A model generated the notes under the pieces. It was not told the origin of the DNA. It searched no databases and saw only the letters and a list, made by a program, of their open reading frames with translations. DNA of 33,000 bases from Dicyema japonicum (lineage: Eukaryota > Animalia > Dicyemida), in contig RDEW01000011.1 in NCBI GenBank assembly GCA_011109175.1, forward strand, positions 103,036 to 136,035, read 5' to 3'. Position 1 is the first letter of the stretch. Each line of letters opens with the position of its first letter. Below are positions 7,971-27,772 of this stretch, piece by piece. Both the position numbers and the translations under genes were made by a program.

Positions 7971-8999
7971 CTGAAAGGTAAAATTAGGGTGAATTTTAAT
8001 CATTATTGATTTTAATCTTAATTTAATCAATTTTAACTAACAGTTAACCTTTCCCTGACAAATTCTCTTATGAAGATTAAATTATGAAAAAACTATTCCA
8101 CTGAAGAATGAAATGATGTCGCGACGGTAGGACGTGGAAAAAAAATGGAAAGGAGGGTGGACCTACTTTCCCACCTCTCTTTGGAAGCGGAAAGCCTGTA
8201 ATGAAGTATTGGAAGATGGATTTGGTCGGCACAAGCAGATGTTCTCCCTTTGGTTCCTTCCTTGTATTAGTTAGTTATGACTGTGCTGGGCTTACAATGG
8301 TAAGCCTGGGGTTAATAATAATGGTTGGAGACAACTTGAGCCTTCCTTCTATGTGCATGAACTAAATAACTGATTCAGAAGACATTGAATATGGGAGGTT
8401 TCTTAACTACAAAAATGTTCTTGGCTCACCCAAACATTATTTACAAAACTCGTATGTCAGACAAGCATTTTAAGCTTTATCATGGATTATCTCTGATACT
8501 CGCGATCAAATGAGTCAGGTTTTTTTTCGCATCAATCGACATAGACTTTAACTCATTGTCATGTTATTAAGTGCTCTGATCATTTTTACGAATCAGGTAC
8601 GTGATCCCAGTGTATAATCATTCAGGAAAATACTTGGATTAGCGACAAGATCCTTCAAAATATACTCAAAAAATGATAAAAGACATGACACTTTTTGATA
8701 AAGAAACCCCCCGGGGTTTTCAGGTGATGGTCCCTGTCATACACTGTGCCACATGACTCAGTCATTGCTGGTTACCTCTATTCCATACACTATCGAAATA
8801 TCTACAATCATACAGAATTTTTGAGCCGATGCCATGTCCAATGAGAAGAGCTGTTCAGGATTCTCGACCCTGCCGGACTCATCCTCTCCCTTGTCGGTCT
8901 GGGATCACTTAGTTAGTTGAGAACTTTTATTTCTTTCTCTTTGACCCAGTGATCCTGGGGGAATATCCAGCCCGATTGTTGTCCACTGCTGCATAACTG

Positions 9000-10456: not shown

Positions 10457-11908
10457 TTAATTATTTCTGGATATTATGAGAATAATCAATATTAATGTGT
10501 TGAGCAGGAAGAAGATGAACAGGAATTGAGATCCTTTAACGACAATTTTAGTTTTTTGTTCTTTGGTCATTGTAGATTTGTTTTTATTTGACAAATTTGT
10601 TGATTTGATTTTTGTAAACTTTATTAAAGAATGAGTTGTCTTAGTGGTGTAATTATTTGTTAGTTTTTGCCAGTTCTAAATTTAAATCAAGTAAACTATA
10701 TTCGGATATATGCCCAACGTCGAATGCAATTCGATAAGAGAGGAAAAACTTTGCAGACATCATGAAAGTCGTTATAATAAAGAGTCCATACGAAAGCCCC
10801 GGCTATATTTACATTTCGAACAAAATTTGCCTATAATTATGTTGTCAATATTAAACTCTGGCGTGAATTGATTCCATGGATTCACAGCCTATCCAATAGG
10901 CCATATAAAACCCATGCTTAGTTTTAGTCATATTTTGCCAGTTTTCACAAATCTAAATATTTTCATTATATGTAACATCTGTCTGTAAAATTGATTTTTC
11001 GTCGGGATTATCGGTTACTGGTGAATTTTTTGATTCTCCTCTGTATGCATTACAATATGTGTGTACTCCCAAAACAATTTTGGGCAGTGGTACCCCATTA
11101 TTGAACCACAGCTTTAATGTGTTCTCCTAAAATGATTCGAATTAAATACAGCACAATCAGCGTTGTAAGAAGGACATGTTTTTCCCTGTGAAAAACTCAC
11201 CATTGATGTCACGATTAAATAATCGCAAAATCTATTTTACATAAATTAATGGTTCTTACGAAGAAATATGTGACATTAAACTGAATTCGTCAACAAATTG
11301 ATAAATCGTCGCAAGAAGCAAATATGTTTTGATAAATTTTTATTAAACTCACGATATAGAACCTAGGTCTTAAATATTAGAACTTTCATCAATAAAAAAT
11401 ATTTTTTGGGATTACGTGTATTTTCTATGTAAATATTGTACCCATCAAAATGGTATTTTTTGAGAAAATTTTGTACGTTTTCGGCAAATAGTAAAGTCGC
11501 ATTTTGATTGTGGGAAAGTATTTCAATTCTGTTATGACCGTAGCGTTCATAAAGTGTTAAAATTATCTTTAAATTGGGATTTATTAACTTCAGTGAATAA
11601 AGATCGTGGTATTTTTTGAATTCGCTCATTCTATTTATTTCATTATCATATTTTAAGGGAGCCGCTGGAATAGGAGATAGACTATCGATATCAACGTAAG
11701 ATTGATAATATATAATGTGGGTGCAGAGATATGGATAAATTTCACTCAATCTAATTTCACTGCTGAAATGATTCGCGGTTGTGCACATTAAAACTTTACC
11801 TAAAATTGCTGAAAATAATAACTATTTGGATCCATGTGCGTTGTAGGTATAGTCTAAATTATAATTTTGTAAAGATACGCTTATTATGTTTAAAATTAAA
11901 ACTAGCAT
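10457..11908 (-). CDS. GH18 chitinase-like protein, probably catalytically impaired, with a hydrophobic C-terminal tail
   Basis: IYPYLCTHIIY, LKLINPNLKIIL, FLKKYHFDGYNIYIE, WFNNGVPLPKIVLGV and AGAFVWTLYYNDF are GH18 motifs. Short hydrophobic N-terminus. About 8 tiny introns. C-terminus FLFIFFLLNTLILIILII. Confidence 0.85.
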
Positions 11909-14214: not shown

Positions 14215-14878
14215 GGTTGAGGTGGTGACGACATCTCTATTGCACTATGTCTTATTCGTATTCTTTACCGACTTCTCCGTTCACTCTGGGAACTTTCAAT
14301 TGCAGAGGACTTAAAAACCTCACAAGAAACACCAACTGGTATGCTACCTAGCCACATGAAGAGGATAGAACTAAACACCAGGTTTAGAATATGCAAAGCT
14401 TTTGTAATCCCAGTACTAACCTGCAACTCTGGAATTTGGGGAATCTCTAAACGGGAAATAGACCGTCTTTACTCCTTCACAGAGCTCAGCTCAAATCGGT
14501 AATCAAGATTAACTGGCCTATGAAGATCTCTGATGCAAACCTTTATAATAAATGCAAATATGGCGTGCTGTCAGAGGATATTTTCTATCAAGACGTCTAA
14601 ATGACCAGGTCCCCTCAAATTCCTGCAATGGTCAACTACTTTGCACACACAGGAGCCGGATTTCGCGGAAGACCAAGAACGACAGTTCCGTCTATCTTGA
14701 ACGAAGACCTATCGGCGGATGGTATGAGACTAACTTCGGCAGACGATCTGAACTACCTAAGAGAACTAGCGGGCAACAGAGGATCATGGTCGAGGTTGAC
14801 GAAGAAGATGATTAGGAATACGGGACAAGGGAAACTTAACTAATTTATGTTTTCTCGGGAGTGCTTTTAATAATAATG
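14215..14878 (+). mobile_element. Internally deleted RTE-like LINE (APE start fused to 3' end)
   Basis: FTLGTFNCRGL at about 14280-14312 is followed within about 300 nt by AMVNYF...FRGRPRTT...DL...LRELAGNRGSW. The tail is GGGAGTGC plus a TAA-rich run. Confidence 0.75.
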
Positions 14879-15699: not shown

Positions 15700-16250
15700 T
15701 CCCAAGATAGAGGTCTTCTTAGTAGGGATCGGGGAATCATATATATTGACTGTTGATTTTATCAGTCTCTTATTCGTGACTTGGTGAACATCGTTACATG
15801 TGACCTACATGGTGGGACTTTTAGGCTGTTCTTCAAGAACCCATCGGATTTGATGTCTCTTGCAGGTCTTGGATGTTTCGTTGCTATCACGAAATCATTA
15901 GCGTACGATGAAGGAACGAGTTGTGGGTAACTGGAAAGGAAAGTCACTAAGGAAAACGTTTAATATCGTTGGAGACAACAGAGATCCTTGTGCCACTTCA
16001 TTCGGAACAAATTGTGCTTTTGATTTTTGGTTATTCATCACCAATTGGCCCCTTCTACCATAACTTGAGTTTGGGGTGGATTGACGTTATGAAAATTTTG
16101 CGGTTAGAATCTTCCGGGAGACTGAGTCAAAAGCTTTCTCGACATCTATCAAAACCACGGTTTTCTCGTTTGGGTTGAGAGTATTCATTGAGGATAATAA
16201 AGTCGTCGAAACTGTCTTATAAGAGAGCACCTAGTTGATCCAGTTGTCGT
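15700..16250 (-). mobile_element. Non-LTR reverse transcriptase remnant
   Basis: VVLIDVEKAFDSV and SYANDFVI (degenerate YADD). Confidence 0.75.
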
Positions 16251-18665: not shown

Positions 18666-19291
18666 GTTTTTGAACTATCAGAATAGAAACGTGCAAGATT
18701 ATGGCAATTCAAATAATTGATTGTATAAGAATCAGCACGTGGTTAATTGGAAGGATGATAGTCCATTAAATGTCTACTTCGCTTTATGATGGATGAAAAC
18801 CCATGTCCTCGTTTTTTCATAGCCATGGAAAGATGGACTCAGAAGACATTAGAAACCCGATGTTCTGCACAAATGAATTCTTCAGATGCACGGAGGATCC
18901 CGGTTTTAATTCCGACCCGAAATTGAAAGAACTCGGTCATTTCAGAGGCTCCATGTATATTATTAATCAGTCCAGGGGAATTTAGTATCCTACCACACAT
19001 CCTCTCAAAGCTCCCCCAGGCAGTAATTTCCAATTTCTAATGTTCCGGTGTCTGCTATTTTTGCCTCCCGTAGGCAACACATGGATAGCTTGTATCGTCC
19101 AAGCTCTCGTGCGAGCTGAGGGTTTTATACATAGGATTGAGTCTATGTGATGATAGTTAACGTGATTCTTTGTATTTTGTTAATAAAAATGAGAATTTGA
19201 TAATAAACTAATTTTTATTTTTTTGTAGTTTTTAAAATTTTATTCTGACAGTAAATCATAAGAACGACCAATTTATTGATTCAAAAATTAG

Positions 19292-19703
19292 TCATTGGAC
19301 TGTCGTATTTCTGTATGTGATGTACAGAAAACCGTCTTCGCTTTGATACCTTTTGTGGAGTTCAAACATTGTGTAACTAAATATTGTATTAAATTACCCC
19401 AAAGGAAGCCGATAATTTCTGACAAGTAGATATAATTCATCTCTAGGAGAAAGTTTCAATTTCATTCGAATATAACTGCAAATCGTCTTCAAAGTAATTC
19501 CATCGTCAATTAAGTACTGGTCGTTTGGAAGGCACTCAGAAAAATTATCCGATGAAAATGGAAGTATTATGGTCTTAAAATTATGCTAGATCGATCTTTT
19601 GACGGGTTCACGCAAATTAACTCTGAGCACCTTAATCTTCTATCAACTAAAATTGTAGAGTTAAAATACTCAAATCGAGAGATCTGACATGTGTATCTTT
19701 CAT
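19292..19703 (-). CDS. Divergent ATG8/GABARAP-family ubiquitin-like protein lacking the C-terminal Gly (not in the ORF track)
   Basis: MKDTHVRSLDLIDRRLRCSEL...QYLIDDGITLKTICSYIRMKLKLSPRDELYLLVRN...TMFELHKRYQSEDGFLYITYRNTTVQ*, colinear with Atg8. Three tiny introns; the donor of the second is unclear. Confidence 0.82.
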
Positions 19704-20646: not shown

Positions 20647-23439
20647 TTAACTATCATCATCATCATCATTCAAAAGTGATATATTCATAATAGACTCATC
20701 AGACTCAAAATCATCACTCAAGTGAGGATTAAACGGTGAAGGAAACACAGTATTCTCCACATTAAATCTACTTGGGGTTGCCCCTACAATAACACAAATC
20801 ATAACCACTAGGACTGTACACCGATGGATTAACATCCAGAATCATAGCCTCCAATTTACTAAACATTCTCCCAAAATCATCATTAAAGGAATCAATCAGC
20901 TGATTGAACGCAGTAACATAGTCACATCTGTTCTTCTCTAGCTTGGTCCCCTCTTCTCTATACTTATCCATTAATTCAATAGAAGATTTAACAAAAAGGT
21001 CAAAACACTCGCGTTTCGCCTACAATAAAACACGTGGATGTACCCTTAGAGGTATGTTCACATCATTCTCCAACTTTTTCCACACCTTATCGAACTCTCC
21101 CTCATAGTGTCGAAGTAATGATTCTAACGTAGCACAGTGAGCCAGTTTCTCGCTCCCAACCTTCCTCATCGAACCCAAAAAATCGTCCACCACCCCAATA
21201 AAGGCCTTATAATTATTCTACAATAAGCACATGGTAACTTTTGAATCGATGTCTCTAACAACCTCATCAATCTTCCTCACTACACGCCTAAACTCAGACC
21301 AGTATTGAGTCAACGACAAGGAAGCCTCAAATCCCTCCAAATCATATTGATGGTAGACGTGGTCATCGAATGTGTGGTGTCTGTTATATTCACTTGCTAT
21401 ATCCGTGATTATCTACATGCAAATAACCCATACATTTTTGAAGTCCCTAACCGACTTATCCACATCTGCCAGACACTTCTCCCTCTCCAAGTAGTTTGGA
21501 GTCCTCAGCTTCTTCAAAAAATTCTCCCTCAGGGACTTCATAGCCTCGTTATATGCATCTCCATTGAGCTTGATGTCACGGGTTAGCGACGCTATATCGT
21601 TTCGTAGTTCATCTGTATTTGATGATTCATCCACAAACGCGCCAATCTCAGTGATTCGAGCAGAATTAATCACTAATTGACTATTTATGGATCTTCTTTC
21701 CGCGGCCTACTATTATTAACGGCGATAACCAGCAAATCGTCATTTTTTTCACGGAAAGTCCTCACTTTCTCATTTATTCCGTCTTTCGCTAAACAAACAG
21801 AGTGATCCACTTCAGAAATCAACGAAACTGAGACTTTGCTGATTACATTTTCTAACGACATCCTTTCCTCATCGAATACGTTGTTGTACTCGTATAGAGA
21901 ATGTACTCGGTCAGTAAGGTACTCAATTTCCCGAAAAATTCGTCAACGTAGGATATCATATCATTTAGGTGGTGTTCCGCCGCAGAAACAAAATTTCGCT
22001 GTGTTTTTTCATTCCTTAAGTCAATTTCAGAAAATCCCGAACGTACCAAGTCCAGATTATCCCTTATTTCTTTGATATTCGCCAATTCCTCTTTCATGGA
22101 GTCCCCAATATTCCTCAAACGAGTAAATATCTCCAGTCTCTTCTCGTAAATATGTTTCCGCCTTTCATGTTCATTTTGTTTATGTACAATCTGTTCTCTA
22201 AGGTCCAATAAGGATCTCCTCAGCTGATCTACGTCCTCCCACTCCCTGCTAATTTTCTCCTCAGTCTCCTTTATGGTTCGACTCAGCTGACGGGAGACTT
22301 CAACATACTGCGATATTCCTGTACGGAAACCTCAGAGACGATTCTCTCGCGATCCTTGATCTCCATCTTCAGGTCCATGGTCTCCGTAATCCGAAAGTCC
22401 AATTCATTAGTCATTGTTTCATGAACCTGAGAATTCATTACAATCGTTTGATTCTCTGTCAGTTTACCCCATTCTTCCTTTAATCGCCCAATTTCAGCGT
22501 TAAAAAACTACATTCGATATTTACTAATACTTTTTCTGGATCACTGGTCTTGTTTGGTGTAATAACGTGGGTAATACCCCTTATCTTCCTCGCAAAACAC
22601 ATCAGACGAATGGTTCCCTCCAAACATGAGGCGGCTGGGGATATTGAGAAGATGAAACTGTTCATGTTGGTTTCCTACCAGCGATTCTCTCAGGTATTTT
22701 GTCAGCCGTGACTCCTTGTATGGGACATATGTGGCTTTTATGTATAACGAGTTCAGGACATCTTCAAATACGGAGAGATTTGATCCTAGAGCGGTTTTTG
22801 TGTTCAGGTTGTCCGATTCGTTGTATATAAACGCAAGAACGAGTGTTCCAACGTCAGTACTCCCTTCATGAGGAATAATTACAGTGATTGTGAAAATTGA
22901 ATGCCCAGAGACCACTGGGGTGATCTTTGAGTGTCTCAAGTATATGATCCACATCCTTCATATATGTTATAGTAATTTCAGTTGGGGTTCTAGCTAGACT
23001 GTGTTCTTCTAATTCATCCTCCTTTATAAGGTTTAAGTTCCCTGTCACTTAGGTGGATAGCTGATATTCGTACGGCTCTCTGGACAGGGCCATAACTCTG
23101 ATACGATAAAAGAAAGTATCTTAGCTGAGTGATTTTCGGAAGAAATATCTAAAACAGTATGGTTGTAGCCGGCGATGACGTCCTTTATAAATTGAGAAGC
23201 AAGGGACTTCCACGCGTCAAATGGGAACAGTTTTTGCTGAATATTTTGTCGAATCTGAAGGTCCGTCGTAAGGATCTTAGCAGTTTGGGGTCGTCTATAG
23301 ACAATTCCTTGTTTGTCCGCCTGTTTATTACATCTCTGGAGGTTTCTGATTCAACATCAGTGAGATTCCTTATATTAGAGTTAAATTATTACTTTATTTT
23401 GATATAAACAGGACATGTTACAGAAAGTTCAGAAAGCAT
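20647..23439 (-). CDS. KIF11: Kinesin-5 (BimC/Eg5)-like protein with a degenerate motor, coiled-coil stalk and BimC box; several apparent frameshifts
   Basis: RTFRFDKIF, DVIAGYNHTVL, HSIFTITV, YVPYKESRLTKYLRESL and ISPAASCLEGTIRLMCFA are kinesin motor motifs, followed by a long heptad-rich stalk. The spliced tail VYSPSGATPSR (22-nt intron at 20784-20805) is a BimC box. Confidence 0.82.
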
Positions 23440-24720: not shown

Positions 24721-25527
24721 CTCAACGACTTTTCTTGTGTTTCTTTCCGCTCTTTGATGCTTTTGTTGAGTTCCTCCACAAATTTCTAATACCTGAGACA
24801 AAAAATGTATTCCCCGTGGTTTCATCGCTAATCATATTTTCCGCTCACACTTAACTGGTATCTCAAGAAAAAATTGTGTGTTATTATTCCGAGACCAGGT
24901 CAACTTATTATCATTATGCGAAAATAGGACTACGATCCTATCCCGAAAGGACTCCGTTGTAAGAATTTTCTTTTTGAAAATTTCGAGAAAGCATAAAATA
25001 TTCAAGGATAATTTTTGCTTTGAGACTAAAATGTATTATCAAAAATGGGTCTCAAATATATAGAGCTTGTTTAAGTAAGAAAAGCATGCATTAAGATGCC
25101 AAGGCCACGATTGACCAGAGTTATCGAAAGTGAATATATTCTGTAGCTCTAAGCATTATATCAGGCGATCTCGTATAATCAAAAAAATGCATAATTCAAA
25201 TGCCAAATTCTTTAAATCGCCAGAAAAAAAGCTAACCAGTGTCGGAAAGTTAATGATCCTTTTTGGTGCATTCTTGGCACTGAAACAGTTGGATCTTGTA
25301 ACACCACTCTAATTTAACAAGAGAAGAGGAGGAACAGATTATAAGGGAAGAAACAAGTCTGTTGGTTTTTTTAATTGTGGTTTTTGAGCAATGATGATAA
25401 ACAAATTAACTTTGAATATTAATTTACTAAAAAACTAAATTTTAATAAAATAATTCCAGTAAAAAATAAAATATTGATTTTAGATTATTATTATTAAATT
25501 TTCTTTGAGCATGAAATTTAATTTGTC

Positions 25528-27772
25528 ATGTTTCTGATTAGTCGTTCGGCTCGAATATTTCGTCTTGATGCTTTGAAATCTTCAACATTCACCAGCAGAC
25601 ATATCGGACCTTTTCCAAAAGATGTGCAGAAAATGCTGGAGATCATCAAAGTCAAGGTTAATCGATTTTATGACATTTAGGATTTGGATCTAGTCAAAAA
25701 TGTCGTACCTGCTGATATTTTACTCAACCGAAAACTAAATATTCCGCCAGAACTTAGTTGAATTATTTTTTAAAGTCAAAGGCGAATCTGAGGCACTAAG
25801 AGGCCGAAAGGATATCAAAAATGAACACTGTGGGAAGGTCCTTTATTGGAATGGGGTACCACAACTGTAATATCCCCACTACAATAATCAGAAACGTGCT
25901 GGAAAACCCTGGATGGTTATATAACCCCTTAAACTCGTTAGGTACACCGCCTACACTCCATACCAGGCTGAGATATCCCAGGGACGTCTGGAGGCTCTCT
26001 TCATATTCCAAACAGTCATCTCGGACCTCACAGGACTACCATTTGCGAATGCTTCACTTCTTGATGAGGGCACAGCGGTTGCCGAGGCAATGGGAATGGT
26101 TTATCGGTTGGATTTATGATCATTTTAGAATTACTAAACGGAAGAAATTCTTTGTTGACCAGTTCATTGACCCTCAGACACTCTCAGTTGTTAACACAAG
26201 GGCCAGGTCTTAAGTTTTTATATTTAGACTTTTTGGCTGGGATGTTCAGATCGGAAATTTGCTTACAGATTCGATCTCTGGTAACACTGCTGCCGTCGTA
26301 TTTCAATATCCAAATACTTTTGGGAACATCATTGACAGATTCGATCTCGTCCCTTATTAAACCGACTGGAGAATTCGGCGTTGATATTGCAGTCGGGTCT
26401 TCTCAAAGACTAGGTCAGCCAGTCGGGTTTGGTGGACCACACGCAGCCTTTATTGCTTGCAAGAAAGAGCACGTGCGTAATATTCCAGGAAGAATAGTCG
26501 GACAGACAGTGTTTGTTTGATTTTTAGCAGTTCAGTACCAACGACGGAGAGAAGAGTTACAGATTGGCTCTGCAAACTCGGGAACAGCATATCAGGAGAC
26601 AAACGGCCACAAGCAATATCTGCACGGCTCAGGCACTTTTGGCTAACTTGTGTTCGTTTTACTGCGTTTACCACGGAAAAGAGGGGTTAGAGTCATTGGC
26701 TAAGAGGGCAAATTCCAATGCCCGATTTTTAGCGAACCGTATACTTTCTGAAAATATTTAGAACTGTCCAAGAATGGATACAAGATAGCGTATGATGACT
26801 ACTTTGACACCATCACAGTAAAAGGAGGTGAAGGAATTCGTCAAAAATACACGGAACAAGGATATGTAAGGTTGATCGATTAAGAAGTAGGTGGTTGTTT
26901 CATTGGATGAGACTGTAACCCATGTGGATATGGCTTCTCTTTGCAAAATATTTGGGGTTGACTTTGAAGTATTGGTTTTGTTTATTTTATGGTTAATGAG
27001 TGGTTGAACACGCCCTTCTCCATAAAACAAAGACGGCACTCACAATTCCTTACTGACCAAATATTTAGAGAGTATTCCCACTATTGACACGTGTAGTTTC
27101 AAGTCGGAGACGGAATTTATGAGGTTTGTGAAAAAATTGTTAAATAAGGACATTTCGTTGGTCCATTCGATGATTAGTCTGGGATCCTGTACGATGAAGC
27201 TCAATTTTCTGGAGGAGATAATATTGTAGAGTTTTGTGCCCACGAGTTTATAATCAATTTAGAGGAGTTCAGCAAGTCCGCAAAGATCGATCCAGTCGAC
27301 GTGGCCAAGAGATTGATGGATTACGGTATTCAGGATTGTTTCAGTTTAGGGTACCATGCCCCACGACGTCTTTTCCACTGAAGAATGTGCTGATGATTGA
27401 GCCCACTGAGTCTGAATCGTTGGGTGAACTCGGCAAATTCTGTAACGCTATGATCTGTATTGGGGATATTTACAGGTAAACCATCCGTGGAGAGATCGCT
27501 GATATTGAAAATGGACGAATGGACCCAAAATTTAATCCACTTAAGGTTGATGTCTTATATCTAGGTTAAGATGTCCCCACATACAGTCCGGGTGGTCTGC
27601 TCCTCTCATTGGGACCGTCCGTACTCCCGAGAGACGGCAGCCTTTCCATCGGTTGCTACTCCTCAGTAATTTTTAGAAACTGATTAGTCCATCTAACAAA
27701 GTCTGGCCTGCTGTTGGACGTGTCAATGAGGTTCATGGAGACCGGAATTTGATTTGCAAAATTACCAATTGA
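25528..27772 (+). CDS. GLDC: Glycine dehydrogenase (glycine cleavage P protein), internally deleted as assembled
   Basis: [103 protein letters not shown] and [13 protein letters not shown]. More than 10 tiny introns. A large central segment is missing. Confidence 0.95.

Follow-up and report, generated by a model that had tools for sequence, protein, structure and literature searches.

Dicyema japonicum is a dicyemid mesozoan that lives as a parasite of octopuses. The window analysed here is a whole stretch of 33,000 nt of its genome (scaffold C13:103036-136035), with a GC content of 29-42% per kb, and carries on the minus strand, at 19703-19292 (C13:122,327-122,738), an ATG8-like gene, hereafter the C13 gene. 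The gene consists of four exons, its three introns measure 23, 26 (uncertain) and 21 nt, and its coding frame is interrupted in the DNA, where an in-frame TAA at 19396-19394 sits inside the 21-nt third intron. Genome searches covered 377 contigs totalling 67,542,437 bases; the published assembly is described as 67.5 Mb in 377 scaffolds, with 36.7% GC and a mean intron length of 38 bp (PMC6736024). The features of the gene are listed below in window coordinates, in the order in which they are read.

19670-19703, minus strand: exon 1, with the ATG at 19703-19701, encoding MKDTHVRSLDL plus 1 nt and preceded, three codons 5' of the ATG, by an in-frame TAA
19647-19669, minus strand: intron 1, 23 nt, GTATTT...TTTTAG, phase 1
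19612-19646, minus strand: exon 2, encoding (I)DRRLRCSELIC, which corresponds to the region of helix alpha-2 in the N-terminal extension of ATG8
19586-19611, minus strand: intron 2 according to model A (preferred), 26 nt, GTGAAC...TCTAG, phase 0, product of 113 aa
19574-19611, minus strand: intron 2 according to model B, 38 nt, GT-AG, in frame, acceptor TTTTAAG, product of 109 aa
19574-19596, minus strand: intron 2 according to model C, 23 nt, GA-AG, at the ancestral position, in frame, product of 114 aa
19398-19585, minus strand: exon 3, 62 codons plus 2 nt, beta1-beta2-alpha3-beta3 of the ubiquitin-like core
19377-19397, minus strand: intron 3, 21 nt, GTAATT...TTTAG, phase 2, with the in-frame TAA inside
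19295-19376, minus strand: coding part of exon 4, ending in ..YTMFELHKRYQSEDGFLYITYRNTTVQ
19292-19294, minus strand: TGA stop codon, at the alignment position of the lipidation Gly
19272-19277, minus strand: AATAAA hexamer, 15-20 nt 3' of the stop, a possible poly(A) signal

Other features of the window are the following.

25338-27077, plus strand: segment of a glycine-cleavage P-protein gene (GLDC, PF02347), 97% identical to C146:159225-160968
20650-23350, minus strand: large coiled-coil gene that includes part of a kinesin motor domain (PF00225, 28.3 bits, 22544-22957), located upstream of the ATG8-like gene on the same strand, ~950 nt away
11363-11788, minus strand: open frame with a match to glycosyl hydrolase family 18 (chitinase-like), 35.1 bits
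13700-16200, both strands: fragmentary reverse-transcriptase-like frames, with a weak RVT_1 match (17.2 bits) at 15901-16086
62-619, 8775-8965 and 14738-14875: short sequences with 87-95% identity to regions of scaffold C146 other than the GLDC duplicate, probably dispersed repeats

The reverse-transcriptase-like fragments fit the description of the genome as LINE-rich and 49% repetitive in the D. japonicum genome paper. Both copies of GLDC contain a frame break near 26340-26370 (window coordinates) for which there is no GT-AG bridge, and ~20 profile positions (220-239) are missing from them; the pair may represent a decaying duplicated gene, a gene with a non-canonical intron, or a haplotig remnant. 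The use of GLDC as a calibration for non-GT donors was considered and found unsuitable, this being a 97% duplicate with a frame break and perhaps a decaying gene itself.

Introns 1 and 3 of the C13 gene are identical in position and phase to those of three paralogues in the same genome, on scaffolds C224, C323 and C334 (two of the three intron sites are kept), and in the alignment the phase-1 boundary of exon 1 matches the boundary between DF and EKRK of the paralogues. Very short introns are typical of D. japonicum (PMC6736024), in which introns of 20-27 nt are abundant and only 'GTa' remains of the 5' splice signal and 'AG' of the 3' one (PMC13644364). A 20-nt version of intron 1 (19688-19669) was dropped in favor of the 23-nt intron at the conserved phase-1 position. 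A ciliate-type code with a continuous ORF was ruled out, the TAA belonging to a GT..AG intron of 21 nt whose position is conserved. The AATAAA hexamer was treated as weak evidence because it is absent from the 3' flanks of the paralogues.

The second intron is the ambiguous one. In all four paralogues of the genome it lies between ..(K)(I/V)P and V(I/V)(I/V)EP, and a GT donor was found in all 11 paralogue introns inspected. At this ancestral site the C13 gene has a good acceptor (TTTTAAG followed by ACC) and GA in the place of the donor. Models A and B share a GTGAAC donor located 15 nt (5 codons) upstream of the ancestral one, and model A was favored over B and C because of its length and canonical ends. 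The stretch at 19597-19611 (minus strand) reads VNPSK, resembles HPEK of the paralogues, and is intronic under models A and B; the presence of this relic means that either the donor shifted recently or the GA-AG intron is actually used.

Database searches were run exon by exon, and the joined products were used in local paralogue alignments only. The assignment to the ATG8 family made in the original prediction was upheld by a PF02991 match, by PDB matches confined to ATG8 proteins, and by the intron sites shared with the paralogues; judged from its sequence, the C13 gene is an ATG8 homologue. A six-frame PF02991 search of the whole genome recovered five ATG8 loci, among which the C13 gene scored 34.2 bits against a cut-off of 27. 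When the exons were searched singly, PF02991 was the sole family reported for exon 3 (19.2 bits, HMM 32-70) and for exon 4 (15.8 bits, HMM 78-100). All PDB matches were to ATG8-family chains, with 55 out of 55 for exon 3 (LC3, GABARAP, Atg8, and LGG, the best being LGG-2 and LC3A) and 106 out of 106 for exon 4 (Atg8, LC3C, and GABARAP among them).

The canonical paralogues, located at C224:236.7 kb, C323:1599.9 kb, C334:836.8 kb, and C1:627.6 kb, all keep the [FY]-G motif. The C1 paralogue is LC3-like and the remaining three are GABARAP-like, C224 and C323 being recent duplicates (84% identity) with conserved introns. The C13 gene is single-copy in the genome and shows ~25% identity to each paralogue. 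Against the GABARAP-like paralogues, the locally joined model A protein scored 31-41 bits; the values for C1 and for Dicyema ATG12 were 22 and 19. An ATG12 identity was hinted at by the ESM Atlas, where the clusters nearest to exon 3 were mixed ATG12/ATG8 at a borderline 0.90-0.91; it was rejected on the basis of these scores, of the lack of a PF04110 match at the locus or for the exons, and of a separate ATG12 gene in the genome. No ATG8 or autophagy entry was found in the supplementary files of the D. japonicum genome paper. Comparison of exon 3 against 1.84 billion representatives yielded three spurious repeat proteins only (e.g. P0002) and no relative, and a word search with exon 3 was blank, as was the control search with a canonical paralogue exon. 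Since these libraries contain no Dicyema proteins, the blanks are uninformative on expression and orthologues.

In ATG8 proteins, a C-terminal Gly that follows F/Y is exposed by ATG4 and is then linked, via ATG7 and ATG3, to PE. The C13 gene was originally predicted to carry its stop codon exactly at this invariant Gly and to have lost the aromatic residue before it, and the alignments agreed with both statements. On the minus strand, the tail reads GAC GGT TTT CTG TAC ATC ACA TAC AGA AAT ACG ACA GTC CAA TGA, which translates as DGFLYITYRNTTVQ followed by the stop (TGA at 19294-19292), and the TGA fell in the same column in three independent gapless alignments. When the locally spliced products were aligned with the four paralogues of the same genome, the stop coincided with the Gly column, gapless from DGFLY on. 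In the alignment with GABARAP (1gnu_A, 117 aa), residues 2-26 of exon 4 corresponded to 90-114, Q27 to Y115, and the stop to G116. In the Pfam PF02991 alignment, residues 2-24 of exon 4 corresponded to HMM 78-100, and in C224 the Gly codon, GGA, falls at HMM position 104. Both the paralogue and the GABARAP alignments place Q at the position of the aromatic residue.

The paralogue tails read YAKESVFG-SF (C224 and C323), YGKESVYG-GC (C334), and YDNELVYG-F (C1), and their Gly codon is GGA in three and GGG in one. TGA is also the normal stop of the C224, C323, and C1 paralogues and of Dicyema ATG12. The C-terminal [FY]-G conjugation motif is missing from the C13 gene, which has TGA at the Gly and Q at the aromatic position, and the conserved E at -4 in the paralogue alignment is replaced by T. 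Because Q (CAA) is at least two nucleotide changes away from TAT/TTC, the tail differs from the canonical one by more than one event. The replacements by Q and T are in line with the degeneration of the whole tail that had been claimed, but the argument is weaker than stated, since the tail keeps one out of its four conserved columns, a proportion that does not differ statistically from the 12 out of 32 invariant columns kept overall. The Q before the stop and the T at -4 suggest, as a weak argument, that conjugation ceased to constrain the tail some time ago.

A profile search of the genome identified ATG4 matches at four loci (C334:1216.8 kb, C1:1050 kb, C63:31 kb, and C68:426 kb), as well as ATG7 and ATG3, together with a weak ATG10-like match. 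Dicyema ATG12 was located at C224:~391.7-392.0 kb (minus strand) and comprises ~101 aa and three introns of 22-25 nt. It terminates in ..KKPVYG followed by TGA, and the covalent ATG12 system appears to be retained. If the C13 gene is a paralogue that became non-conjugatable beside a working system, as had been proposed, other ATG8s and the conjugation enzymes should occur in the genome; four canonical ATG8s and ATG3, ATG4, ATG7, and ATG12 were indeed present. With the machinery and four canonical ATG8s in place, the loss of the Gly is specific to the C13 copy.

The original claim that the product would be no substrate, as encoded, for ATG4/ATG7/ATG3 chemistry follows from the replacement of the Gly by a stop and is retained here. 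The predicted protein ends one residue before the Gly and none is within reach, so that ATG7 adenylation, ATG3 transfer, and a link to phosphatidylethanolamine would not take place. The product of ~113 aa would be expected to fold as an ATG8-type ubiquitin-like domain with N-terminal helices, and since no conjugation would be possible, any function would be non-covalent. Such a soluble ATG8-fold protein could bind partners via a modified LIR-docking face and might serve as an adaptor or compete with the four conjugatable paralogues, a putative role of the decoy or scaffold type. A soluble ATG8-fold protein with altered LIR specificity, adaptor or competitor, is the most economical reading of what the gene encodes. 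The LIR-docking face was mapped on LC3A using residues that we take to form the two hydrophobic LIR pockets and the basic rim. In the pockets, L53 and I67 are unchanged, the replacements are conservative (F52>Y, V54>I, L63>I, and I66>Y), and F108 is kept within DGFLY. In the basic rim, the replacements are K49>N, K51>Q, and R70>K, which would weaken it, and P55 is replaced by D. The changes of basic rim residues make partner binding uncertain.

We give an even chance to the proposal that the C13 gene is a maintained non-lipidatable ATG8 paralogue that is single-copy, fast-evolving, open, and spliceable. No internal stop or frameshift was present under model A (113 codons) or model B, and introns 1 and 3 have intact GT..AG ends. 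Neutral drift was simulated with substitutions only, starting from a paralogue CDS and using the base composition of the window and a kappa of 2. At 50% identity the open frame survived in 0.8-1.7% of the runs, at 30% identity in 0.2-0.7%, and the test is conservative because indels were ignored. Columns that are hydrophobic in all four paralogues are still hydrophobic in 29 of 37 cases, versus a background of 43%, and the invariant paralogue columns are kept in 12 of 32 cases, versus an overall identity of ~25%. The open frame in the light of the drift simulation, together with the conservation of the core, indicates that the sequence diverged for the most part while selection was maintaining a folded protein. 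The wider proposition, that a metazoan keeps under purifying selection a lipidation-barred ATG8 beside four conjugatable ATG8s and a full set of ATG3/4/7/12, is put at slightly under even.

Alternatively, the C13 gene may be a recently inactivated, unprocessed pseudogene of a divergent and formerly conjugatable ATG8 paralogue, a reading that we regard as possible although on the whole unlikely. It would have been inactivated by GGA>TGA at the Gly codon and/or by GT>GA at the intron-2 donor, too recently for further lesions to appear. Each lesion falls at a site critical for function: a single transversion separates the stop from the GGA of three paralogues, and the ancestral intron-2 donor is GA, as opposed to GT in 11 of 11 paralogue introns. 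However, the Q in place of F/Y requires at least two further changes at a position kept by conjugatable ATG8s, a canonical in-frame GT-AG intron 2 of typical length (26 nt) exists, the 113 codons contain no other stop or frameshift, introns 1 and 3 are intact, and the drift simulation places most of the divergence before any loss of constraint. The in-frame cryptic donor of models A and B could, for its part, be a lucky rescue of a decaying gene by modelling. Gene decay may also occur nearby, as GLDC in the same window has an unbridgeable frame break, and expression of the C13 gene is presumed only.

An assembly or sequencing error, or the capture of one allele, is considered improbable; the organism, or its other haplotype, would then carry GGA and encode a pro-form ending in ..VQG followed by 11 further residues. 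The question turns on one base, the frame past the stop stays open for 11 codons, and the published assembly, with 1.24% heterozygosity, was collapsed to haploid (PMC6736024). Even with GGA, however, P2 would be Q and not F/Y, and -4 would be T and not E. In addition, an extension of 11 codons is about what is expected by chance for an AT-rich 3' flank, and AATAAA lies closely 3' of the TGA.

A glycine supplied by a downstream exon had been named as an outcome that would overturn the original prediction, and each GT from FLYITY on was combined with all AGs located 15-400 nt 3' of it. None of the short-intron products acquired a Gly, introns of at least 185 nt gave unrelated tails only, and no [FY]-G was found in the other two tail frames or in the 11-codon read-through, so neither a downstream exon nor an alternative frame provides the residue. 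A mis-modelled C-terminus, with the Gly provided by an additional exon, by read-through of the stop, or by recoding, is therefore highly improbable: introns are tiny here and easily missed, and one GT (19300) does lie inside the tail, but in all four paralogues the tail lies uninterrupted within the corresponding last exon, read-through would add no Gly, and recoding is unlikely because TGA is the ordinary stop of C224, C323, C1, and ATG12.

Canonical ATG8/LC3/GABARAP proteins are homologous to the C13 product over its whole length and share with it introns 1 and 3, the hydrophobic core, and DGFLY(I/V)xY; the C13 gene differs from them in lacking the Gly and the aromatic residue, in its ~25% identity, in the changed LIR rim, and in a shifted or damaged intron 2. 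ATG8 mutants of the G-to-A and delta-G types are used as negative controls in autophagy research, and the C13 gene, if maintained as a non-lipidatable paralogue, would be their natural counterpart. Lipidation-independent roles of ATG8 are debated and hard to separate from canonical autophagy, the proteins studied being all lipidatable. A maintained C13 gene would thus offer a clean natural experiment on the ATG8 surfaces and partners that matter without membrane anchoring, and would extend the theme of the ubiquitin-like protein that gave up conjugation from ATG12 to ATG8. If the gene is a pseudogene or the stop an error, the finding would be an ordinary one.

Several known systems are comparable in part. 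In C. elegans LGG-2, Arabidopsis ATG8h/i, and apicomplexan and trypanosomatid ATG8s, the Gly is already exposed (PMC7615515, PMC10104450). As in the C13 gene, the stop ends the ubiquitin-like domain and there is no extension for ATG4 to remove, but it stands after the Gly and these proteins are lipidated, whereas in the C13 gene it stands in place of the Gly. Lipidation-independent activity is described for Drosophila Atg8b in the male germline, for non-lipidated Drosophila Atg8a in midgut elimination, and for yeast Atg8-Hfl1 at the vacuole (PMC7615515). These proteins function without PE conjugation, as proposed for the C13 gene, but they retain the Gly and are lipidatable, whereas non-conjugation of the C13 product would be hard-wired in the gene. 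The closest evolutionary precedent is apicomplexan ATG12, an autophagy ubiquitin-like protein that has lost its conjugation Gly and is still functional, binding ATG5 non-covalently (PMC10104450; see also PMC11764061). It belongs, however, to another family (PF04110), and Dicyema has an ATG12 of its own (..VYG), whereas the C13 gene scores as ATG8. In the literature searched, no natural Gly-less ATG8 was found, the cases being engineered mutants, Gly-exposed ATG8s, and Gly-less ATG12 only. Five ATG8 loci and up to four ATG4-like loci in a genome of 5,012 predicted genes constitute an unexpectedly rich set for a reduced parasite.
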